Assembly (NCBI GenBank): GCA_004764695.1 | Contig: SMSO01000037.1 | Coordinates: 2,580,747 to 2,644,746, forward strand | Direction of reading: 5' to 3' | Length of the DNA: 64,000 nt | Origin: Schizochytrium sp. TIO01 | Lineage: Eukaryota > Protista > Bigyra: Labyrinthulomycetes | Part shown: positions 579 through 17,158 of the stretch, piece by piece | How positions within the stretch are numbered: position 1 is the stretch's first letter | How the letters are laid out: each line of letters starts with the position of its first letter | Program-made: the position numbers and the translations under genes | The notes under the pieces: generated by a model | Database searches by the model: none | What the model was told of the DNA's origin: nothing | The model's input: only the letters and a program-made list of their open reading frames with translations

Positions 579-3500
579 TCATCTTAATCCATCCAATCTA
601 AATCTACGGCCAATAACATCAGGTGTCAGCAAAGGCAAAAGCTGTGCGCCTAGAATACTCGGAAGACTTTTATCTTGAATGTTTTCAGTCCAGTACTTAC
701 ACAGACGCTCCCCGCGTAGCACCCTCCACGCCTTACGAACCTGTTCAAATGAATCAGGGTAAAATGGATCTTGCCCGAGTCTTCTTGAGCAATTTCTCAC
801 ATGCTCATGGCAAGATTCACTATCCTCTGAACTATATTCCAGACACCAAGCACAAAAGTGGTGACCACATGCAGGATTACCACATTTCACAGCACAACAC
901 CCTTCAAACTTATCAAAACAAGCGTTGCAGTTCGGACAGTATGCATTCAGGATTTTCTCCTGTATGTACCGTAGATGCATCTGTGCATCGCGGGTCAGGC
1001 CATCTGTTTGAATAACTTCAGCCATTCGCCTCTGAATTTCTTGCTCGGCTCGAACTGCTGCTTCACTTTCTACCTTCATCTGCGCAATTCGCAATAAATG
1101 ATTTAAGGCATTCGGAGCAAGGCGAGTGATCTCTTGACCCGTGATTCTTCCATCACATCCAGGATTCATGCAGGCCATTGTACCGTCGGCATCCACAGTA
1201 ACGGAAGCATCTGGCTGCGCAGCAGCTTCTACTGACCTTGCGATACAATCTTGGCAAAGAAAGTGCCCCCTTTCACAGCTTGTGCTCTTGGAAAGTGGAT
1301 TTGCCACCTGACACACAAGACACACCCCTGTTGGAGCTTCAGAGACTCCAAATGCTTCATGTTGAAGTGCTTCATGCGCACTCAAGCGCTGGTTAGGGTT
1401 TCTTGCTTTCAGGGTCTCAATGAGTTGCTGCATTGCACTAGTTAGCTCAGGATAAAGCTCCTCTAGCACTACACCCACAGAGTACATATCCATTGCTGTT
1501 TGGAACTTCTCCACAGGGCCATTTTTTAACTCAGGAGCAATGTACCGGGGTGTCGCCTGAAGAGACGTGAAAGTTGCAGTGTAGTTTGCAACTTTGATGC
1601 CATCAAAATCACCAAGCAATGGCGTTCCATTACTTGTGAGAAAGATATTTTCTGGTTTGATATCACAATGCACGATTCCATGATCATGTATATCTGCCAC
1701 ACCAATGAGCAGCCCTGTAGCAAGCCGATCACGAGCCGCCTTGCCTTCATTAGGGTGTTCCTGAATCCATTTGGCTAAGTCTCCTTGCTCGTAGAACGGC
1801 ATGACAATACATCCACGTGGCAACCCATGAGAAGTGTCTATAAAAGCACCAGTTATACGAATTACGTGCTGAGACGTTACCTTTCCTAAATTGGCAACTT
1901 GCTTGTAAAACGTCTTTGATTGGCTTATGTGACCAAGCTGGAACTGCTTAAGAACCAGTGTCTTACCATCATTGTCAAGAACCTTTTGTACGGTCTTGCC
2001 CCCTCTGAAAGCGAGGGGGCGTCCAACAGGCTGAAAGTCCGAGATATTGACATTTGCCAACCAGAGGTCTGAGCAAGCCACTTCAAATACACCATCTGTG
2101 CTTACATGGAGCCTTTCCAACCAAACTTGGTCTTTCACGAGCTCTGGGTAGTGTTCTTGCGCATGTTGCAGAGTTTCAGCAAGCTTATGGCGATAAATCT
2201 TACTCAGTTCGACAGGAGTTCCTTTGGATAAAATACCTTCTTGCTCCGTAATCTCATCGCGATAAAACTCCCTTTTCTTCTCTGAACTAGCTTCGTTAAG
2301 ACTCTCTTTGGCTCTTCTTAAACCTTCCATTGCCTTTCGCGAAGTTTCAAGCTTCTTTTGTAGCTGCTCCATATTGGAGACATTTGGTTCCGTTGAACCC
2401 AAACGCACATAGTCATATAGCTCAGCGAGAACGTCTGGTTCAAGCGTGTTTGTGTTTTCATTTAACTCAATACCCTCAGCAAGATTTTCCACACGATGGA
2501 AAGCTGAACCGATGGTTCGCAGTACACTTTGCTCTTTTGCATGCAATGTATGCTCTTTAAGTAGTCCGAGCTCTTCTTGAAGAGCATTTTGGAGTTCGAT
2601 CAGTTCAAGTTTTAGCTCTGACGCCTTCTCAGGTGATCTGAGGACGACGCAGAATGCATCACCAAGCCCCAATTCTGCTACCCGCTCTATGACCCTTTCG
2701 ACAGCCTGTTTGCTTCGTTGCTCAGCAGATCGGCCCTTTTGGTTCAACCTCAATCTGTAGTCTTCGACGCACTTGCCCGCCTGAGTAGCAAGTTCTTGAT
2801 AGCTCTGAAAATCGTCAGTGCATGTATCTTGAGCGCCAAAATTTATGGCCAGATGATCTAACACACTTGTGAGTTTCACTTTAAATTTGTGGACGCCATC
2901 CTCGTCATTTTCAGGGAAGCTTTGCATGAACCCAGGTTTGAGTGTCTTCGACGAGTGATCGCAGGTGTTCTCGTTCCGCATTGCGCTGTTTAATGAGACT
3001 AAGCAAATCATCTTGGCAGCTTTCACGGGAAGCCTGGCTTTGGAGGTTCTCTAGACGCTCTTTGGCATTTTTGACATCACCAGAAGTTTTCCGCAGCTTT
3101 GTTGGACCTAAGTCGATACTTTGATCCTCAACGTAACGTGGCAATCCACTGTGGACGGTTTCACGAATTTGGGATTGGAGGGTTTCTAAACGCTTTATAG
3201 AACTGAAGATGTCATTAGAAGCTTTTTGCATCTTAATTTGGCCAAAGTAGCCTTTAATTGCAGGAGCCAAAAATTCCTCGAGCAGCTCGATCCCAATGTG
3301 TTGAGATTCTTCTCCAACTTTGCCAAGCCCCATGCGCAAATCCGAGACTTTTTCGGCAAGTTGAACCACATTCCCAAACTTCACACTGGTAATTTCCGGA
3401 TTTTTTCTTAAGATGATGTAATCAAATGCAGTGAACGAGCAAGTCAGGATTTTATTAAAAGAAACTATGTCGCTCAACTACGAAGACAATGAACTTACGC

Positions 3501-6500
3501 GGATTTATCTGGATCACGGAGGTCTTCAGGAACCTCAATATCTTCGTTGCTTTCTGATACTGCAGAAGTCCTAGGTGCCTCGTCTATTATTATGACACTT
3601 GAATCGGGGTCTGAGGATTCGGTGTCTGAAGAACCAATGTCCTCAGCAGAGCTATATACCTCCTCAAACAAGTTCTCATGAGCTGCATTAGTTGAAAAAG
3701 GCTCTTTGTAACTGTTTTACATCAATTATACGCTCAGAGTGGCAGTTAGAAAAACAATCAGTGCAGTATATACGACCTCATAACTCCATCTATGAAAGGA
3801 GAAATGCAGAATAGGAGGTTTTGACCTAGCTCGAAGCAACGATAACAGAAGCCTGGAACTTACCGGATTCCCACAGAAGGAAATGCTTTGTGAAGAGACT
3901 TCAAAACACCAACGCTAATATGATTATCCCAGATACTGTAGGTTCGTTGTTTGTTCATCATCAAGAGTAGTCAGCCAAGCTCTGTTCATATTAATTACCA
4001 ATGCGGGATCCAGGATTATTATTTCTTCATTTTCTGTTGCCTGCCCATATTCAATGATAAGAAGCTGATCGTCTTGGCTTAGTATGCGCAGACTTGTTCT
4101 ATTCTTTTTGTTTTGTTTTGGTCCATTCTTTTAGTCCCGCTCCTCTTTGCCTTTCTTTTACTTTCTACGACAAACAGTACATCAAATAATCACCCATGTG
4201 CGTTTCTATGTAATGAACGTACTGTAATAATACCAATTCATTGCAATACTCCAGTGTATTGATGAGAGCCTTGGCACCTGCATCACCGAAATTGTTAGAA
4301 TGAAGACTGTGTACTCCATGACTCAATCATCGTCAAGGCATGTCAGTTAAATGCTATATGTACAGCCGCTTAGGTGTCACCATGGGACACTCTCACACTC
4401 TCACTCTCTTCACAATTCACAATTCACAATTAACTATTTGTACATTCTCAGCATTTGAAAGAGAATCCTAATGATTTTTGCACGTCATGAGTTTTTGCAT
4501 TTTATTTTTGCGTCTCTACGCGGTAACAAATATTGATATTTTTTCCATTTCCTATTTCCCTACTTTGTTTCCCCCAAGAGAATATATCGAGTATATTCTA
4601 TGCAAATTCCCATCGATATAAACATACTCTAGTGTGACCAGACCCATGCAGCTATTCAATGCCTTGCTGACAGCCTCAATGCCTGCAGCACCAATTCGGT
4701 TAGACCCAATACTGTGTGTACGTTGGATGGTAGATGCCAACAAAGTTAGTCAAATGCTCTACATATCATTGGTCGATCGCCGCAAAACCTATGATTGAAA
4801 GTATACGCTTCTGTCGCTACACGATTTGTTTTCTTAGCGACTGAAGCGTGACCATTTTGATTTTTGCCCTGTTGTGTAGACTATTTGTAGTAGCCTAGTT
4901 TCCTGCATTTGAGCCTCCTCTTGTGGAAATCCGTCTTGTCCTTTCCTTCAAATAAACGTGAAACAAGGATCCATATACATTTTTTCCATGAGACGTACTT
5001 CAATTCGAACAGGTCCTCGCAGACCTCCAGCGCTTTAGCGAGAGCCCTGGCGCCTTCATCGCCAATATCATTATCCTCAAGACTGTGTTAACGTCATTCA
5101 ATCGTTGTCAAGAGAAGTCAGTTAGGTGCTACGTGTATCAATCGCCCATGTACCACTAAAGATGACCTTTCTACCTCTGCTTTTCACTGTTTTATGGGAT
5201 ATGAAAGCCGAGCTCAATGATATTTGATTTGGCAACATAAAAATTGGGTTGCTATCCTTGTTCTTCTTCACATTTCTGTTTCTTATCAAAATATTGCAGA
5301 TCAGCTTGTATAGTGCAGCGTTCTTCCGTAAAACGTACTTTAATTCGGTCAATTTGCTGCAGTTCTCCAGCGCCTTGGCCAGCGCCTTGGCACCTCCCAT
5401 GCAAATCTTGTTATGTCGAAAACTGTATGTATGTCATAAGATGTATTCAAGCCAAGTTAGCCGAAGGTGCATTTAATACCCAAAAGTCACTGGAAGACTG
5501 ACGCCCCCAGGTTTTAATGCTGTGTTTGTATTCTCAGTCTTTTTAAGTTGGACCAAATTTCTCTGGGAGGTTTATGTTTTGGCGTCATCTATTTGGGCTT
5601 CTAAGTAAAGAACCTCGTTGCTATCTTATCTTTGTCCTTCCTTCGCGTTTCTCTCTTCTTCTTTTTTTTTTTTTTTTCTTCTCGAACTAGTAAATTTAAT
5701 CTAAGAAGTCATTCATCTATATAACGTACTTCAATCTGGTCAATTTCTTGCAGTTCTCCAGCGCCTTGGCCAGGGCCTTGGCACCTTGTATACGAATGTT
5801 GTTGTACTGAAGACTGTATCATTAAGGCGTTGCCAAGGCAAGTTAGTCAACTGCTGCAGATTTGATTTGTCGAAGAACCACTACTTAACACGGGCTCTTC
5901 GCCCATAGTTGGCTGATCTCTATTCTCAGTGGTCAACCAGAACAGAGGAACATCTTGCCTTTTGCAGTTAAGCGTCATCTCTATGAACCTTCTCATGGTA
6001 AGGGGGATCCTTGCTACTATATTCGTTATGTTGCCATTCTATCACCTTCTTCTTGATCTCTCCTCCTCTTCTATCCTCACCTCTCTGTCTCTGTGCTTGA
6101 TTTACTACAAATATCGAATAGAATCCATGCAACCTACTACTCTCAAACTTACTTCAACATGGTCAGGTTTGTGCAGTCCTCCAGTGATTCTGCAAGAGAT
6201 TTGGCGCCTAAGTTACCAATCGCGTTAAATCCAAGACTATGTGTTTGTGTGGATTCGTTGTCAAGGCAAGACATGACAAGACAAATTAGTCAAGTGCTAT
6301 ATATTTCAATCATTGTTGCGCCAAAGACCGCTGCTTCTCTTTACGGCGATGCTTAGTCTGGATTCTCAGCATTTGAAGTCGGTCGTTTTGCTTTTGCGTG
6401 TGTTCTTGCGCCATATTTCCTACTATAATAGCGACTTTTCAATTACTTTTTTCGTTGCTGGTTGGGTATTCCCATCTTGATTTCCACATTTCCTTCTCAG

Positions 6501-9500
6501 GTCAAATAAAACACTTGCATTTTTTCCCCGTAAAACTTACTCCAAAAAGATCAGATTTTTGCAACCCTGCAACACCTTTGCAAAGGCCTTGACTCCTCCA
6601 TCACCAATTCCATTATTATGAAGACTTTCAATGGTTACAAATACAAAAGTCAGTCAAGTGCTGCATGTAGCAATCGTTTATGCGCTACCACAGAACACAA
6701 TCTCTTCACATTTTGGTGCCTCTTCTATATTCTCTGAACTCCAGTGACGACCATTCTGTTTGCTCATCCCGTGTTGGACTTGATTCATTTGAGTATTCTC
6801 TTGGTGAGAAACCGATCTAGTTTCTTTATAGGATTCGAATATCCTTTCATCTGTAAAACGTACTTTAATTTTGTTAGGTTCGTGCATCCCTCCAGTGCGT
6901 TAGCGAGAACCTTGGCAGCTTCAACGCCAATTTCGTTACCCATAAGGCTGTTTATATTCGCTCATCCAACGTCGAGACTAATTAGTCATATGATGCCATC
7001 TCAGTTGCCTATGCATAGCCAAAGAGCGTCATTTCCCCATGCTTCGTTGCCTGTTCTATATCTTCAGCGTTATGAAATTGGCACCATTTATCTTTCTTTT
7101 GGCGTCCTTCGTTTGGGCTTCTCGGTAATAAGAGACCAATGTGATATATATCCTCTCTCTTCCACTTCCTTCTTGTAACACATCATGCATATTCATGTAA
7201 CCTTTCATTCACAAAACGTACCTCATCGTAGTCAGGGTGGTACAACCGCACAAGGCCTTGGCGAAGGCTTTGGCGCCTCCTTCGCCAATATTATTAGCAT
7301 CAAGACTGTGTGTATGCCGTTAGTTTGTCATCACAATAAGTTAGCCAAGTACTATCTATATCATGTGCCAACTTTCTACCCAAACGCGCTTTCTTCATGC
7401 CTGCGAGTCAAAGCTAATTGTTTTGGTTGGCTTAATGGTTTGGAGTTCTGCATGTGGATCTCCTTTGCCTTCGAGACCTTGTTACTTGCATGTTTTTACT
7501 CGCTTGCCCTGATTCCATTCCCCATCGAGATTAGCGACTAACATTTACGCCGCCTTTCGTTCATAAAACGTACCTTAACGTGGTCAGGGTAGTACAGCCG
7601 TCCAGGGCCAAGCCAAATGCTTCAGCGCCTTTACAGCCAATATTGTTCTTATCAAGACTGGGTGTTGTTATCAAGACAAGTCAGTCAATTTCTATCTTTA
7701 CCCCGGCACCTCCACTATTCCCTCCAAAAGTCAACAATGCAATCTGTGCAGCGTTTCGTTTACAAAACGTACCTTAATGTGGTCAGTGTAGTGCAGCCTT
7801 GCAGGGCCTTAGCGAAGGATTTGGCGCCCCCGTCGCCAATATTGTTAGCAGCAAGACTGTGTTTTTGGATTTAGTTTGTTGTCACCACGAATTAGTCATC
7901 TTCTATCTATACCATATGTCAATAATGTAGCCACAATTTTCTTCACCCTGAGCTGCCTGTTAGTGATATAAAATCAATATGTTTGGCTTCTTTATTCAGG
8001 TATCCTCTCTCTTTAAGACCTTGTTATTTTGCTTTCCATGTTTCTCTTCTTTATCGGTTTCCTATCGGAAGTAGAAATTATGCTTCATACAACCGTTCGT
8101 TCATAAAACGTACCTTAAAGTGGTTAGGGTAGTGCAGCCGTTCAGAGCCTTGGCGATAGCTTTTGCCCCTTCATCGCCAATATCGTTATTATCAAGACTA
8201 AGATTGTCATATGTTCGTTGCAAGAATAAGTCAGTCAGATGTTACGATACCATTCCCCAATTTTCTTCCCTGGGATTTGTCTTCTTCAAGCTTCGCTGCC
8301 TGCTTTTAACTTTTAGCAGTTCAAAGCTAATCATTTTGTTCAGCTTTGAATTGACTATCTGTAGACGAGTCTCCTCTTATTGAAGCACGTTGTAGTGTTG
8401 ACTTCGCTCTTTTGTAATGCTCTGCGTTTCTTTCCCATCGAAAATATTAAGTAAAATCGACGATTTTTTTCGTTCACGTGACGTACCCTAATGTGATCAG
8501 GTTAGTACATCCTTCTAGGACCTTGGCAAAAGCCTTGGCACCTTCATCGCCAATTTTGTTGAACTGGAGTCTGTTTATCCCATTTTTTTCATTTGTTGTT
8601 TAGTTGAGTAAGTCGAGAGCTGCCCACACCATATTCACTATGTCACCACAGAACACTTCATATAAACATACCTCAATTCTTGCAGCTCATTGCAACCCTC
8701 TAGAGCATTGGCAAGGGCCTTGGCGCCTTCACCACGAATATTGGCGGCCTCCAAACTTTGTATATTTCATTCAGTGGTTGTCCAGACAGGTCAGCAAAAT
8801 CCATTCTAATCACCCTTATGCAACAAAAGATGAAATCCTTCATATCTCCAAACTTTGCTGTGTTGTCCTCATGTCGGTGTTTGGAAGCCGAAATGTCTAA
8901 CTTCGCAGCGTTTACACCTTTTGACATTTTCATTAAATTCAATTTCTCTTGGTAAAAGCCTGACAAATGGCTTCATTCTCTCTTTCCCATCTCGTCTTAA
9001 ATATGAAATGGAAATATCAAAGTTGAGTTGTAAAGCTTTCCTGTTCATGAAACGTACTGTAATCCTATCAAGCTGTGGCAGCCCTCCAGCGCCTTGGCGA
9101 TCGCCTTAGCACCAGTTGCGCAGATGTTGTTGTATCGGAGACTAGGTGCATTTCATTATTAATTGTCATCAAAGGTTAGTTAAGCATTATAAACGTTGAT
9201 CACAAAATCGCCACCATACATTGCCACCTCATATTAGGCGGCTGGTGATTCAATTTCCTAAGGATCTAGTCCAATGACTAGTATTTTTACTTTTGCACTA
9301 TTATAACTTTGCATTGACCTTTTTGCAAACCCACTTGGGAGAGCAACACTTATTGGTGGCTTTCTCCCTTCTCCAGTGTCTCTCTTCTTTTTGCTAACTT
9401 CGATTTCAAATATCTGTTTGGCAATTAAACATACCTTAGCATAACCAAATTCTTACAGCCTCCGAAGCCCATGGCGAGGGTTTCGGCGCCTTTAGGACCA

Positions 9501-12189
9501 ATGTTGTTGTTTTGAAGACTGTGCACTCGTACGTTGCCAATATTAGTCGATTGAATTTTGCTTACCCAAGCCATAGATCACCACTACTCCTGCGAACTTG
9601 CTACCTCGTCCATGATTTCATTCTAAATCTGATCTTTTAAGCTACTGGATCAATTGTGTCGTGGTCTTATTAATTCAGACCTCTTTTGCCAAGAAATCTT
9701 GTTGCAATCATTGAGTTTAACCCCATCCAACTTTCAGAATAGTAGTTCTTTCTTTTAGTAAACGTACTTTAGCGCGGTCAAGTTACGGCAACCATCTAGA
9801 AGCTTGACGAGGGCCTTAGTGCCCAGAAAGCCAAAGTGGTTGTCTTCCAGACTGTCATTCGTTTTCAAGCATGTTAGTCAAGTTCTGCCCACATGTCATA
9901 CCTGTGAAGATGTTCCTGGGTGAAACGTACTTCAACCTTGTCAAGTTCTTCAAACCCTCCAGCGGCTTGGCGAGGGATATGATGCCTTCTGCACCAATGT
10001 CGTTACCTCCGAGACTGTAACAATGACACCCATTCGTTATTGAGACAGGTCAGTTTGGTGTTGTAATGTAGGTTGTATATGCGCCACAATAGGGGACGCC
10101 TCTCTTCACTTCGTAGGTATTCTCATACTACTTAAATTTGAAAGCTGGTGATCTGAACTTTTGACCAACTTGAAATTCGACAGTGGTTGTTTAGGTCTTA
10201 AGAAAACTTGTAATTGATCTCTCTTTCTTTTTCTTTAAATTCTCTCCCAAGAAATCCAACATAAACAATCTAAGCAAACTTTTATGAACGAAACGTACCT
10301 CAATTCTTTTAGATTCGTGCAGCTCTCCAGGGCCTCGACAAGGTAAAATATACCTTCTGAACCAATGTTGTTACCCCCAATACTGTGTATATTCGTTCGC
10401 TCCACGTCAAGAAATGTTAGCCAAATACTACTCTCCATTTCAATTGCACTTATGAGCCAAATTAAACGGCTTCTTTTGATCGATTTGCTTCTCTACTCAT
10501 TCACGATCACTAGGTTTGTCTCCGCTTTCGAGATTTGAACTCATCTCTATGAGACGCTTCGAGGTGGGTAACCTTATTGTGAGCTGTCTCTGTTTTATAT
10601 CTCCTTTCGATTGTTATCAGACGGGAATAGCAACCTTCTTTCCTTAAATACAACTTTTCCTTCCGTGAGACTTACCCTAGCCTGGTTAGTTTCTTGCAGC
10701 TCTTCAATGCCTTGGCGAGGCTTTTAGTACCTTTAGCGCCGATGTTATTATTTCGAAGACTGTGTGTTTCTCTCCACATTCATAATTAAAACGGGTCAGT
10801 CACATGCAATTCATCTCAATCGCCAGTGTGTCACTAAAAAGCAATTCTTTCTAGTTTTTGATGCTGTTATATTATGTTTTCGTATCTCTTTTCAGTTCCT
10901 TTCCCCATCAAACATACCCCAATACGGTCAGATTATTGCAGCTCCCCAACGCCTTGGCAAATGCTGTGACACCTTCAGCGCGAACATCGTTACCCCCGAG
11001 ACTGTGTGTATTCATTCGTCCATTGTCAGTACAAATTAGTTAACGGCTAGCCATTCCAATTATCAATGTCAAACCAAATTACGCTGCATCTCTTCATTGC
11101 TTCAACCTAACACTACATTCTCATCAGCATTTCAAACGTGGTCGCTGGATTTTTATCACTCCTTTGCATTTTCCAAATATCTCTTTGTGTCTCTCCTTAA
11201 TACGCAACCTGATTGCAAGCTGCATTCGTTCTCGTTTCCGACCTCTTTTGCTTTCTTCTCAGCGAATATTTGCAAATACAACCCACGCAGCTTTTTGTCA
11301 TTGAAACTTACAAGACGTTAGTCAGATTGTTGGAGGCCTCCAGTACCTTCGCGAATGCTTTGGCACCTTCAGGGCCCATATTATTGTTTTGAAGACTATG
11401 CGCATATCCTCAGTTTGTGTATTGTAAGAAAGTTAGTCATATGCACCAACTTTTCATGTCTCACAAAAGGAGTCTGGCTCTCTAAACTTTATCATTTTCT
11501 TTCTATATGTTCTCAGCACTTTAACTTTGACCACCCAGACTTTTCAACCGTTTGTGATACGCCAATATTTTTTGAGTCTCTCCTTGGTAAACAATCCCTG
11601 AGAATCAATCTTCATTCTGCTTTCAATCTTACGTGTTGCCTTCCCAACAAGAATTACTAATACAAACCACACACCTTATTTCTCTTGAAACTCACGATAA
11701 TATAGTCAAGTTTTTGGAGCCCTCCAGAGCCTTGGCGACGGCCTTGGTACCATCAGGACCAAATTTGTTGTCATGGAGACTAAGTTTGCATCATTTGATC
11801 GTATTTCCAGAATAAGTTAGTTGCCTTACATTTGAGACCTCCTCATGGTAAGAACCCATCTGGTTTTCTGCGTTCTCGCTGTCTGTATCGCTTCTTTCTT
11901 TTACAAGAAAAGTACAATACAACCTTCGATCCAATAAACCTACTTCAAGTGTACTAAGTTCTTGCAGCCCTCCAGCGCCGCGGCGAGGGCTCTAGCATCT
12001 TCGAGACTCAAGTTGTTGTTGCTAAGACTGCACATATCGAATGAACAAAGTAGGTCCAGTGAGTAACGATTCTTTCAAAAACATGAAGACTTGGAATGCC
12101 CAACTTCGCCTTCTCTACGCCAAACTATGAACTTACTCCACCTTTGTGGTGTTGGTATTGATAGCTTCAATGCTCTCTGCGATAGTCAT
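579..12189 (-). CDS. 28-exon LRR(24 plus cap)-acidic linker-coiled coil-Ser/Thr kinase-RING/Rcat (RBR-like) protein, ~1,726 aa; one apparent +1 nt indel at 2914-2916
   Basis: Manual splicing. Exon 1 is 12137-12189 (MTIAESIEAINTNTTKV). Then 24 LRR exons of 84 nt (4223-12027), a cap exon 3864-3935 (IWDNHISVGVLKSLHKAFPSVGI), an acidic exon 3499-3711 (YKEPFSTN...DPDKS) and a terminal exon 579-3406 (ORFs 2911..3477 and 579..3026 join if one base is removed from CTTCCCTGAA). All introns are GT-AG and phase 2. Kinase motifs: LVLK, HCDIKPEN, DFD, YIAPE, DMYSVG. RING: CLVC..CERGHFLCQDC..CMNPGC. Rcat/IBR-like: CPNC..FEGCCAVKC..CGHHFCAWC. Confidence 0.88.
4223..12027 (-). repeat. Tandem array of 24 single-LRR exons (84 nt each) with homologous introns
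   Basis: Exons (plus coordinates): 4223-4306, 4628-4711, 4999-5082, 5339-5422, 5730-5813, 6153-6236, 6541-6624, 6864-6947, 7222-7305, 7574-7657, 7773-7856, 8114-8197, 8487-8570, 8672-8755, 9058-9141, 9435-9518, 9768-9851, 9931-10014, 10299-10382, 10676-10759, 10918-11001, 11312-11395, 11696-11779, 11944-12027. Each is flanked by an AG acceptor and a GT donor (mostly GTACGT, GTAAGT or GTATGT), usually with a CTRAC-like branch point. Consensus xLxxNxIGxEGAKALAxALxGCxxLxxL; all translate without stops. Confidence 0.95.
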
Positions 12190-14731
12190 CGTGTAGATAG
12201 TGCTGTTTCTCGTTACCGGCGCTCTCAAGATCAGAAACTGGGACCTGTGGCGGCTTCCAGGCAAATCTGCAAAGCAGGAGATTGTCCGTACGCAGGATTG
12301 TAGCCTGGCGCTGAAGAGGTTTTGCTTTACCGAGCGTATCTACAGACCTTTGATAATATGTACAGGTTTCGATCGAGGGTTTGTAATACCCACCAGAGCA
12401 TGTGAGGCTTTATTATGGTAGTACCTAAGTCAGAGGCTACCATGAACAATTCTTTCACTCAATAAATACTTGCTTTCAAGACCAACCACAAGGTATTTAA
12501 AATGCTAGTAGGTATATCTTCTCGCACTACTTGAGGGTAGGTAAAAAAAATGTACTGGTCTATAGGAATTGCAATTAATCCTGTTAAGTAGGTTTATATG
12601 TTATTCTGATCTGTATTTGGTAGTTCAACTTGATCATATTATTTCCTGGAATTTTGCAATTGTACAAGCTGAATGTATATCATACTGAAAATACTTATCA
12701 ATAGGCTGTTCACAGTTCCCCACTCCTTTTTATAAGTTCGACGATTTGTAAGTTCAATTACTCATGCACCATGTTTTTTAGTTTTAGTTTTTTTTTTTTT
12801 AATTAAATTAATTTTTTGAATTATGAATGTGATGGGAATTAGTGCATTTTCTTCGTCTATCCTAGGTATTTGAAATAGGCTTCTTGCTTCTTATTAATTA
12901 GCTTTTTTAATGTGCTACAGGATTATGAATATGAAAGAAGCATCTGCAATAATTTCCACCATATTCAAGTTATTTACCTTTCGCTCTCAACATTCAATTA
13001 AAATTATTTGTGTTCAATTAAAAAGAAAAAATTACGCCGCTCTACAATGCACCTACTACCTACTCTAAAAGATAGATGATATTAGATAACAATAATTAAA
13101 ACCCTTTTAAAATCACATTTTATTTCAAAGTTTATGTTATGTACATATAGTCTCACTGATAAAGGTATCATAGCTTTGTCCTGCTTACCTACTACATACT
13201 ACAATAGACCTCATAAGCTTGCAACGAGATTGACGGGATTGCTAGAATAGTTGTATTATCAATTCACGATACCTCTCTTTTAATTTCATATTTTTTCCGT
13301 GAACTTTCCAAGTTAGCCAAGCACTGAATAAGTTATTCTCTAGTCACAGCTGCCTGATATTGCGGAGTGCTAGATTATTCAATATCAGTTTTCTCAAGGA
13401 CATCCTCTAAAATGGAAACTGACAGAGGTTTTTCGTTGAAACCAGTGCAGATTTTTGACTGCCAGGAGTGCTACAACTTGCTGCCTATATAAACTCATAC
13501 CCGCAAATGAAAGGTCTATTTGAACAAATCATGTATTGCATAGCACAGAGGTTTTGCTCAAGCAAATTTTAGGAGGTAGTAGTATATAAAAATTTGCTTC
13601 TATTGGGTTCTGTGTGTAGGACCGCCCAAATCAAAGTCTATACATTATCACTGTTCCACAGTTTACCAGACAGAGCTATGAAGAGTTCAATTGATCATGG
13701 ACTGGGTTGATCACGAGTTTCTTGACTGTTTGTCCTATTGAAGTTGCGTCGTATATGTTTTCTGAAATTTGCACATAAAAAACCAACCACTAATTATTTC
13801 AGAAGTTGGCTTATTCTGAATTGTTGAGAAATGAATGGATGGATTGTAAGGCAAATCTTGTGTACCTTCAGTCACGTTCAATCAATCGTTTGGCCATGAT
13901 CGTAATAATTACTATCAGCATCTGATTTTGTCATGTATACCTCGAATCGCGAAACGATTCCCTAGGTAGACACTGTTGGACGCTTACATTGTAAGAACAA
14001 TGGATACTGGAATACGCATTCCAAAACTCCCAAACCTAACTGGAAAACCACTGCAAAGGAACTAAATGTTGACACTGTTACGAGTCCTGACTCCAAGTCC
14101 TTTCTTCATCATGAAAAAGAAAAATGACGGAGCCAAACTCTCAGGTCCAAGTTTATAAACCCTTGTGTGAGTTCTCTCAAACCCTACAAACATCTTCTTT
14201 TCATCCTACTGATCAGCATCTAGATTATTCAAATACAAGTAATAGCAGCGACATTAGCCTAGTTTTCGTTTTGTGAGAATGTATTGTGGGGTATCAAAAC
14301 GATATGTATTTTATGATAAACGCTTACTGACGACCATAGGTAGGTTAGCGATATCACTGATAGGAATAAAGTAGTTCTACACTATCAAAACAATAGATTC
14401 CCTCTTTTATTCGTACCAGGTTCCAGTTGAGAATACAACCTTTAAAAGCAGCGTACCTTATGTGGTTAAAATGTATAATGACGAAAATATTATACCTGAT
14501 ACTTCAGAAGTAGTTAAAAAAAACTAATTCTTCACAGAATGCACGTTTCGGCTTGGTGCCATATGGAATAATAAAAGCAAAGGATGTATTGATTTTTGTA
14601 TTTATGGCAAAATTATGGTTTCCTTGAATTAAGGTTCGACATAATGGTGATTCAGAAATGTTCAACGTTGCATCGTGAAAATAATGTCAAATATTCTGAG
14701 CATGTCACATGGGGAAAGAGGCAAAGAAGTT

Positions 14732-17158
14732 CTAAACATGACCAGTGGACGCAGGATTAGAAGCTGAGTTTTCAGAGGTACGCGGTTTCAGGTTTACTCT
14801 TTCTTCTGTACTAATGGTTTTAGTTTCTGGAGTAATGCTTTCTACTGGTACATCCTTTAATGAACTTTTCTGTTGTCCTTCATCAACAAAATTCTCCTCC
14901 TGATTGTCTTCACCTGTCCGAACGGAATTCTGAACAGAGAGAGGGGGTGTTAACTCCGAGCTATCCCGGGGTATATTCTCATTTCCTGTTTGATTCTCAG
15001 TTGTTCTGTCAGGTGCAGGTGATAGGTCAAGTTCTATCGAATTACGCAAATCTGAAGTATGATCAGTCATACCTTCACTTGATGATTGCTCTGTAACGAA
15101 AGGGGTCGGTATTGGGGTAGGGTTGTTTGTTGGATTCATTGTTGGATTCATTGTTGGTTTCAGTGTGGGTTTGCTGGTTGGTTTGCGCGTCGGTTTGCTG
15201 GTTGGTTTGCGAGTGGGTCTCGTAGTTGGTTTCAATGTTGGTTTCAATGTTGGTTTATTCGTTGGACGGGCTGTCGGTTCCTCTGTCGGCGAGGGCATAC
15301 TTTTTAAAACAACGAACGCTTGTCGCAACCTAAGAACGTGGACCTTTTTCATTCCAATGTCATATAATTCTGAAACTTCCTGGTCGACGAGGAGTTGAAG
15401 ATCTTCCACAGATTCCACTCCTATTTCAAACAAATTGTCCTCATACTTGGACAAGCGGACCTTCTTAAGAAACGCTGCAAGCTCAGGGTCCACGTGGCCT
15501 TGTTGATCCTCATCTTGACCAGAGTCATCCTGCTGGTTCTGTGACTGATTTACTTGTTCAATATCAATTTTGTTTTGATGCTCGTGACCTTCTCCTGTTA
15601 CTAAAAGTGGATAGTCATGTTCGGCATGGTTTATGTTATCCTGAGTCCACGTCGATTGGTCTTCTTGCTTGGACTCGTCTAACTGATCTTGTCTGTTTGG
15701 AGTTTCAGCATTGAAGTTGCTGTCGCTTCCCACAGGTTGATCAGTTGTTGGCATGGACAATGTTGGCTCCTTGCCTGTTGTCGCAGGATTGTAGACATGT
15801 GGCATTGCAAACGCGGGCGATTCTTCGTGTTTTCCTGTCTCATTTATACTGCCAGTTTCGCTTACTGGTTGATGATCAGCATCTGCGACAGAATCAGTCT
15901 TGGGCAATGAAAGCCCAGTGCCTGTTTTTGCAGGTGGTGGAGCGTCATGTATGTGTGGCATTGGGAAACTTGGAGGCTGTGTCGGTGTCTTTGTTACAGC
16001 AATTGGTGGGTGTTTTGCTGGTGCAGGCTTTCTTAAAGACAAAGTTGGTGACTTACTAGGTGCAGAGGTAGGCTCTGTCAACGGGTATTCAGACTGATGG
16101 GCTTTGGCTAGAGTGCCTTGCTCTGGCGTTGAAATAGGAGTATCTACACTAAAAGCGTCAATGTTTTCAGTTCCCTTTTCAGAGTTGTCTACCTGAGTAA
16201 CATCAATGGTGTTATCTGTGAAGAGTGGCACCGCAGTGAGTGCCCCAATATACATGAAATACATCACAGTTGAGATCCCCACGGCCATAAACAGCACATA
16301 CACAAGTCGCATTCCTCGCGCTCCCTCCAGACACTTGCACACGCTTCTTTTCGAAGCCATCTCTACTAAAAAGGGTGCATAGGTTCGTTTTTGAGATTGG
16401 CCTCGTTTGTGTCTTTCAACAAAAGTCTGGGATCTCGTCGTCTTGATCGGGGGCCAGCTCTCTTCATCCTCGTCTTCCAGCCCCATATCAATCTCAAAAA
16501 TATTCTCCATGCCTTCTGCTGCCTTTGCACCCCTTTTCCATGTGTCATGTGCATCAGGATTTTCATTCATGTTTGACTTTGCACTTCCGCTCCCAGGCTC
16601 GCTGCCAGACCTTGCCGTCCATCTGTCCAAGAGTTCGCGTTCCACCTCCGCGTCGCTCTTGGGAACTTCGAGGTCCCGAAAGGCCTCTGAGATCCTGTCC
16701 TTCTCTATAGAACTATCTCTTCCTGTGTGCGCTCTCAATTTTGCTTCTGCATGGGCCCCGGCAGCCCTTGTGGACCCCGAAATCGATGAATCTGCTGTTG
16801 TCGCGAAAGCTGCTGAAGTCCCAATGCCGGAGGGCACTAAAGAAGTGCCGCAAGAGGCGCCGGAGGACGGCGACAAGGGTGTGGAGCTAGGTACTTGCTC
16901 GCGGGCGCGAAGTTCAGGAGGAACACTTAAAGGGCTGTCTCCTAGGTCCAGCGGCGTCCGCAGAGCGGTGTCGTGGTGCCCGTGGCGGCCTTGGGCCTGG
17001 AGCGACGGCCCCTGTCCATGGCGGGGCTCATGAAGCGAAGAATGAGACGTCTGACGGGAGGGAGCGGCAAAACTACTGGTAATCTCACGGGAGGTGCCAT
17101 CTTCTGATCGGAGACGTAGTGTAAAGGGCCGCCGGCTACCGGAGGCCCGCCGGTCCAT
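14732..17158 (-). CDS. Single-pass membrane protein with Pro/Thr-rich (xPT) repeats and a SAM domain, 808 aa
   Basis: Long ORF; hydrophobic segment [29 protein letters not shown]; SAM-like [32 protein letters not shown]...[15 protein letters not shown]; tetrapeptide KPT/NPT repeats. Confidence 0.8.

Follow-up and report, generated by a model that had tools for sequence, protein, structure and literature searches.

Can a single gene generate many recognition surfaces from a row of interchangeable exons? This question is raised by a locus of the labyrinthulomycete Schizochytrium sp. TIO01, contained in a 64,000-nucleotide (nt) stretch of contig SMSO01000037.1 (positions 2,580,747 to 2,644,746 in assembly GCA_004764695.1; hereafter the window, whose own numbering is used throughout). 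A gene on the minus strand of the window, here called the LRR gene, contains 24 consecutive exons that each encode one leucine-rich repeat (LRR). A first-pass annotation, made from the letters alone, interpreted these exons as cassettes of a combinatorial receptor-diversification system. The analysis described here leads to a different answer. The 24 exons are probably the sensor part of an expressed LRR-kinase-ligase receptor gene, belonging to a family whose diversity is germline and not combinatorial.

Architecture and splicing of the exon array

The minus strand was scanned for the pattern AG + 84 nt + GTRNGN with an open frame, which returned exactly 24 exons, all of 84 nt, spanning 12027 down to 4223. 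All 24 are intact, and each comprises 1 nt, 27 codons and 2 nt, giving phase 2 at both ends. Joined together, they form an uninterrupted reading frame of 24 units of 28 residues, with the consensus xLxxNxIGxEGAKALAKALEGCxNLTxL, which is of the ribonuclease inhibitor (RI)/NLR type. The scan and the joined frame together confirm the row of symmetric, one-repeat exons reported in the first-pass annotation. Scanned singly, 14 of the 24 exons match Pfam LRR_6 (PF13516), and a profile built from all 24 matches NOD2 (PDB entries 5irm/5irl) and the RI-like LRR protein DRC5, the latter being the best match. The codon for repeat position 1 is in every case split by a splice junction.

The complete gene comprises 28 exons (12189–582, with the stop codon at 581–579) and 27 introns, as first described, with GT..AG signals throughout. 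The introns are 79–339 nt long and are all in phase 2, with the donor G-T-(A/G)-N-G-T, mostly GTACGTTT, and the acceptor AG. None of the exon ends in the gene (4223–12189) is TA or TG, so that a stop codon cannot arise at any exon-to-exon join, and 25 of the 27 downstream exons begin with T. Tandem Repeats Finder detected no array in positions 3000–14000, owing to the strong divergence of the exons and the absence of similarity among the introns; the array is hidden, as had been claimed. The window contains 16 open reading frames (ORFs) of at least 250 amino acids (aa), a count that fits an intron-poor genome.

Six sequencing runs (n = 6) were treated as RNA-like, a status that is guessed, none of them being recorded as RNA. 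They contain 0.43–0.62 of the sampled words of 579–10578 (0.46–0.55 for the three runs that were aligned), a region with an exonic fraction of approximately 0.48. The read evidence consists of assembled contigs of the three aligned runs (X17, X18 and X16, from three different studies and under three different organism labels) and of a DNA run (X11), compared with 2850–8849, which covers array exons 11–24. A long T run on the plus strand at 5648–5688, inside intron 21, was skipped as a repeat in this comparison.

Within this interval, 15 of the 16 predicted introns were recovered as spliced joints with exact coordinates (CT..AC on the plus strand), confined to the three RNA-like runs and absent from the DNA run. 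Every intron between array exons 11 and 24 was recovered in this way, and intron 26 (3863–3712) is not among the joints listed. No exon-skipping or reordered joint is found among the joints listed for exons 11–24 and the tail in the three RNA-like runs. The array is expressed, and in the dominant transcript it is spliced constitutively, each exon to the next. As far as the contigs show, there is a single constitutive isoform, and the alternative exon combinations envisaged in the first-pass annotation are not seen. An apparent link from 8755 to 5365 is present in the RNA-like runs, and a short piece of DNA contig fits the same place; it looks like a neighbouring exon beyond the end of the compared interval that fits a similar LRR exon. 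Low-depth pieces across introns in the RNA-like runs indicate some unspliced RNA or DNA. For array exons 1–10, the open frame and the splice signals predict real exons throughout, and the length of one X18 contig (record 22, 1188 nt) matches exons 1–12 plus about 127 nt of 5′ untranslated region, as an argument from length only.

The encoded protein and its gene family

The LRR gene encodes a large cytosolic protein of approximately 1,726 aa with an LRR sensor, a kinase and a ubiquitin-ligase-like tail. Its N-terminal part consists of about 26 RI/NLR-type LRRs of 28 residues; an acidic linker and a helical region follow, and then a Ser/Thr kinase and, last, an RBR-like zinc module (Table 1). 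No signal peptide or other N-terminal domain is present, exon 1 leading directly into the first LRR, and no membrane segment was detected in either tail piece (Kyte–Doolittle maximum over 19 residues of 1.25). Pfam matches on the tail pieces are the kinase and a weak RING alone; NACHT or NB-ARC was not found, so that the protein is not an NLR by domain content, and neither tail piece matches Roc or COR, which sets it apart from ROCO proteins.

The motifs HCDIKPEN, GDFDG, LVLKQF and IAPE can be read in the kinase, which by sequence possesses the features of a eukaryotic protein kinase (HxD...N, a DFG-type aspartate and the β3 lysine). No clear assignment to a kinase subfamily was obtained, the top matches being MAPKK-like, NEK and CDK. 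The C-terminal 260 aa contain two conserved Cys/His clusters and gave a model with a pLDDT of 85.7. RBR ligases occupy nine of the ten top rows when this model is compared with PDB folds (RNF216 with E = 1e-4, HHARI, parkin, HOIL-1 and ARIH2 among them) and most of the lower rows, and a sequence search of the same 260 aa against the PDB gave weak RING, parkin and ariadne matches (E of 0.1–4). A CPNC...EGC...C...C...FCAWC motif looks like an Rcat domain, and a separate IBR is not evident in the module. On the strength of the model, the C-terminal module is best described as RBR-like (RING1...Rcat-like), as distinct from a proven RBR ligase.

Paralogous arrays are present elsewhere in the genome, as the first-pass annotation anticipated. 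At least 55 paralogues of the tail ORF were scored (335 candidates), with 59–67% identity, in a genome of approximately 64 Mb, and a 27-position LRR profile returned 1,883 candidate exons, of which 150 were scored, all with E < 1e-11. The scored LRR exons of the paralogues lie in arrays with a spacing of approximately 420–430 nt, and the paralogue loci examined have the same 84-nt phase-2 exons. Among 15 young paralogues, pairwise identity is 88.8% in the intron that separates the final two LRR exons and 92% in scaffold codons, as against 65% in binding-face codons (repeat positions 3, 4, 6, 9, 10, 23, 24 and 27). In a quick tree, the LRR gene groups with L003 and P0001 and falls outside a clade of 25 copies with short branches. 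Within its large family, it is a diverged member present in a single copy.

Homologues of the tail are also present in Hondaea fermentalgiana, as an LRR_6 protein with a kinase and an ankyrin protein with a kinase, and among JGI and Logan proteins; a metagenome scan gave one weak kinase match alone. Comparison of these two Hondaea homologues (P0005 and P0007) shows the repeat-type 'sensor' swapped on a conserved helical-kinase output module. The literature search returned nothing relevant on this LRR-kinase family in labyrinthulomycetes.

We propose that the array arose by ancient tandem duplication of one exon-plus-intron unit, the symmetric 2-2 phase preserving the frame, and that the introns have since diverged beyond recognition. 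In the resulting LRR solenoid, the variable positions 27, 1, 3, 4, 6, 9 and 10, on the concave β-sheet and the ascending loops, would bind a cytosolic ligand. The kinase and the E3-like module fused to the solenoid could then pass binding on as a signal, or ubiquitylate the bound target directly. The family would owe its diversity to the germline, in the form of many paralogues with binding-face codons evolving faster than introns. Of the recognition receptor proposed in the first-pass annotation, the receptor-like LRR gene, the many paralogous arrays and the fast binding-face codons of the paralogues are retained, and diversification by combination within the gene is not.

Several points weigh against this proposal. 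The RBR assignment comes from a predicted fold, whose matches score modestly (E = 1e-4 at best, TM of approximately 0.3), and from weak sequence matches, and the helical region has no recognisable fold (about 300 residues were folded, with a pLDDT of 66.7 and no PDB match better than E = 1). Ligand binding, kinase activity and ligase activity are predicted. The contigs, which cover exons 11–24, represent the dominant form; they drop rare isoforms and may miss somatic events. Finally, the changes between strains in the LRR exons (8 non-synonymous and 3 synonymous) are scattered over scaffold and surface positions.

A more far-reaching form of the proposal is offered tentatively. The gene may be a slow-evolving single-copy relative of a germline-diversified cytosolic repertoire of proteins with LRRs, a kinase and an RBR ligase, with dozens to hundreds of copies located mostly at chromosome ends. 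The one-LRR exons may then serve as the recombination unit for new specificities, and the old copy perhaps produces minor exon-skipped isoforms. The organism is a protist known for persistent mirusvirus-like elements.

The protein might instead have a different role, as a substrate-selecting ubiquitin ligase or a scaffold in ordinary cell regulation, comparable to an FBXL-type adaptor or an axonemal RI-like LRR protein, and not as an immune-type sensor. The axonemal protein DRC5 is the best PDB match of the repeat profile; this copy is old and single-copy and lies among ordinary genes, with no rRNA gene in the 64-kb window (an Rfam scan of the window was empty); and differences between strains are not concentrated on the binding face. 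Such a role is nevertheless unlikely for a family of at least 55 copies with binding-face codons that diverge much faster than introns, a pattern typical of recognition repertoires, and with a Hondaea homologue that replaces the LRRs by ankyrin repeats on the same tail, as in modular sensors.

Age of the array and integrity of the gene

The array is old, static, single-copy and not homogenised. Identity between its exons averages 59%, with 80% for the best pair, and neighbours in the array resemble each other only a little more than exons lying far apart. No two array exons share an exact match longer than 25 nt, and the introns match one another in short pieces alone, at or near splice sites. 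A 1.15-kb piece of the array, compared with the genome, gave clear matches through exons only (73–82%) and one weak match (69%) that partly overlaps an intron; the locus is single-copy. The introns of the sister locus, C30 at about 1.00 Mb, are also unique. Recent duplication or shuffling of exons within the array was not seen, the best exon pair being 80% identical and the introns not alignable. Such recent events are visible in the paralogues, with introns 88.8% identical. With non-homologous introns and no more than 25 identical bases between exons, the array provides little homology on which unequal crossover could act.

DNA of another strain (strain G, run X11) aligns collinearly with the array as one 6-kb piece; 32 substitutions and a few small indels separate the two, and rearrangements are absent. 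The number and order of exons 11–24 are identical between the strains, so far as the contigs show. In the interval 4223–8849, strain differences number 11 in 1,176 nt of LRR exons and 16 in 3,451 nt of introns (odds ratio of 2.0, p = 0.08). The substitutions suggest weak constraint; they are too few to call selection, and relaxed constraint fits equally well.

These observations bear directly on the suggestion that exons are skipped, duplicated or shuffled, by splicing, unequal crossover or somatic rearrangement, to give many variants from one locus. With 24 exons of 84 nt in phase 2-2, every exon-to-exon join is in frame, and the absence of exons ending in TA or TG means that no join creates a stop codon; the 72-nt phase-2 LRR exons of brown-alga ROCO genes are reported to be alternatively spliced (PMC11378527), and the low-depth unspliced pieces in the RNA-like runs could be taken in the same sense. 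Other evidence weighs against the suggestion. The joints listed are consecutive in three RNA-like runs carrying three organism labels, a second strain has exons 11–24 in collinear order in its DNA, and the introns and exons offer little homology for crossover. In lamprey VLR-type assembly the germline gene is incomplete, whereas here it is complete and intact; donor-cassette flanks and selector elements were not seen. Diversification within the locus is accordingly judged improbable, and the unequal crossover and rearrangement proposed in the first-pass annotation find no support for this gene.

The reading frame of the last exon is interrupted in the assembly. As assembled, the LRR frame stops at 2911, and an 815-aa kinase ORF (579–3026) continues in a different frame. 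Comparison with the paralogues by tblastn locates the shift, of one base, between WVHAK and ENDED, and most paralogues have a single open last exon of approximately 925 aa. The extra base at 2913 is absent ('left out 1') in four of four public runs, among them X18, whose sequence agrees with the window in all other respects. The frameshift is an assembly error or a private change. Because the extra base is missing in all four runs, the LRR-kinase fusion is real, and the true product is one protein of approximately 1,726 aa. Automatic annotation of the window sequence would yield a separate LRR protein and a separate kinase protein. A pseudogene, in which the frameshift at the end of the LRR frame leaves a remnant with LRRs only and, in the other frame, a dead kinase ORF, is very improbable and was rejected, given that reads of all four runs (three RNA-like and one DNA) lack the extra base, that this base lies in a GGG homopolymer, where an extra base is a typical long-read assembly error, and that spliced transcripts are abundant relative to unspliced pieces.

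Table 1 Exons, predicted domains and frameshift of the LRR gene, in window coordinates.
Feature	Position	Strand	Basis and remarks
Exon 1, 53 nt	12189..12137	-	Sequence; ATG at 12189, encodes MTIAESIEAINTNTTKV + 2 nt, already LRR start
Array LRR exons 1–5	12027-11944, 11779-11696, 11395-11312, 11001-10918, 10759-10676	-	Sequence; open frame, GT..AG
Array LRR exons 6–10	10382-10299, 10014-9931, 9851-9768, 9518-9435, 9141-9058	-	Sequence; open frame, GT..AG
Array LRR exons 11–15	8755-8672, 8570-8487, 8197-8114, 7856-7773, 7657-7574	-	Sequence and spliced joints
Array LRR exons 16–20	7305-7222, 6947-6864, 6624-6541, 6236-6153, 5813-5730	-	Sequence and spliced joints
Array LRR exons 21–24	5422-5339, 5082-4999, 4711-4628, 4306-4223	-	Sequence and spliced joints
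Shortened last LRR/C-terminal cap exon, 72 nt (IWDNHISVGVLKSLHKAFPSVGI)	3935..3864	-	Sequence; joint 3935/4223
Acidic linker exon, Ser/Asp/Glu-rich, 213 nt	3711..3499	-	Sequence; joint 3406/3499
Last exon	3406..582	-	Helical region, kinase, RBR-like module and C-terminal helices; tblastn against paralogues
Helical region, ~450 residues	3406-1998	-	Within last exon
Ser/Thr kinase (predicted)	~1997-1350	-	Pfam Pkinase, E = 2.3e-31
RBR-like zinc module	~1322-843	-	Fold model of last 260 aa and PDB fold matches
Apparent +1 frameshift	2911..2918, extra base at ~2913 in GGG run (plus strand)	-	tblastn against paralogues; contigs of four runs

The last LRR/cap exon is 72 nt long here and 84 nt long in the paralogue loci L004–L030 (motif ...AKSLHKACPSVxI), an in-frame difference of 12 nt. 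Upstream of the LRR gene, beyond an AT-rich gap of approximately 2.4 kb (36% GC in 12001–14000), the neighbouring gene (14732–17158, minus strand) is a single ORF for a protein of 808 aa, in which a weak SAM-like domain and a PT-type KPT repeat run are seen.

Comparison with known systems

The Dscam-like idea of combinatorial splicing is corrected by these data, the available transcripts showing plain constitutive splicing. The analysis adds to the family a diverged copy with unique introns and no rRNA gene nearby, provides direct evidence that its array is spliced constitutively and that the LRRs, kinase and ligase-like module are fused, and corrects an assembly frameshift. Because this copy is old, single-copy and provided with unique introns, it is the easiest member of the family to amplify and to knock out, and its RNA can be tracked without ambiguity; it also constitutes a natural control for the homogenised paralogues.

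With the paralogues of the same genome, the LRR gene shares the 84-nt LRR exon and the same tail (59–67% identity), and it differs from them in its unique introns of irregular length (79–339 nt) and its 24 full LRR exons. The array period of the paralogues, approximately 420–430 nt, falls inside the range of unit sizes (366–529 bp) of the LORE-TEARS spacer repeats of Aurantiochytrium limacinum (bioRxiv 10.1101/2023.06.15.545109), a likeness of unit size.

Dscam, with its arrays of mutually exclusive exons, and lamprey VLR, with somatic assembly of LRR cassettes, resemble the array in having tandem cassettes of the same size that encode modules of a binding surface. In the LRR gene, however, the dominant transcript includes all cassettes in series, and the gene is already complete in the germline.

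The LRR exons of NOD2 and NLRC3 are 84 bp long. The vertebrate NLRs (NOD2, NLRC3, NLRC5 and zebrafish NLR-B30.2) are likewise cytosolic proteins with RI-like 28-aa LRRs, and the profile of the array matches NOD2 structures; in the zebrafish NLR-B30.2 family, each LRR is on a single exon (bioRxiv 10.1101/027151). Unlike these proteins, the product of the LRR gene has no NACHT or NB-ARC and consists of LRRs from the N terminus, and its predicted output is a kinase with an RBR-like ligase module, in place of CARD, PYD or B30.2. An output of this combination was not found in the literature searched.

The closest published system is that of the brown-alga ROCO and LRR-kinase families, the published non-animal parallel found for candidate receptors with one LRR per exon. 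In Ectocarpus and Saccharina, the ROCO and LRR-kinase genes carry exon-shuffled LRRs on 72-nt phase-2 exons (Zambounis et al. 2012, PMC3341825; Teng et al. 2024, PMC11378527), with alternative transcripts and positive selection on the concave face (PMC3341825; PMC11378527). Both systems belong to stramenopiles and have one LRR per exon, exons of equal length and phase 2 at both ends, and in both the genes form large families of candidate immune receptors, the variable or positively selected residues lying on the concave face (a predicted position here). They differ in the repeat, which is a plant-like 24-aa LRR on 72-nt exons in brown algae and an RI/NLR-type 28-aa LRR on 84-nt exons here, and in the effector, which is a Roc-COR GTPase or a kinase in brown algae and a helical region with a kinase and an RBR-like module here. 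For brown algae, LRR exons are reported to be spliced alternatively; none of the joints listed here is of that kind, and there is no recent shuffling in this array. The LRR gene extends the genomic principle known from brown algae to a labyrinthulomycete, with a different class of repeat.

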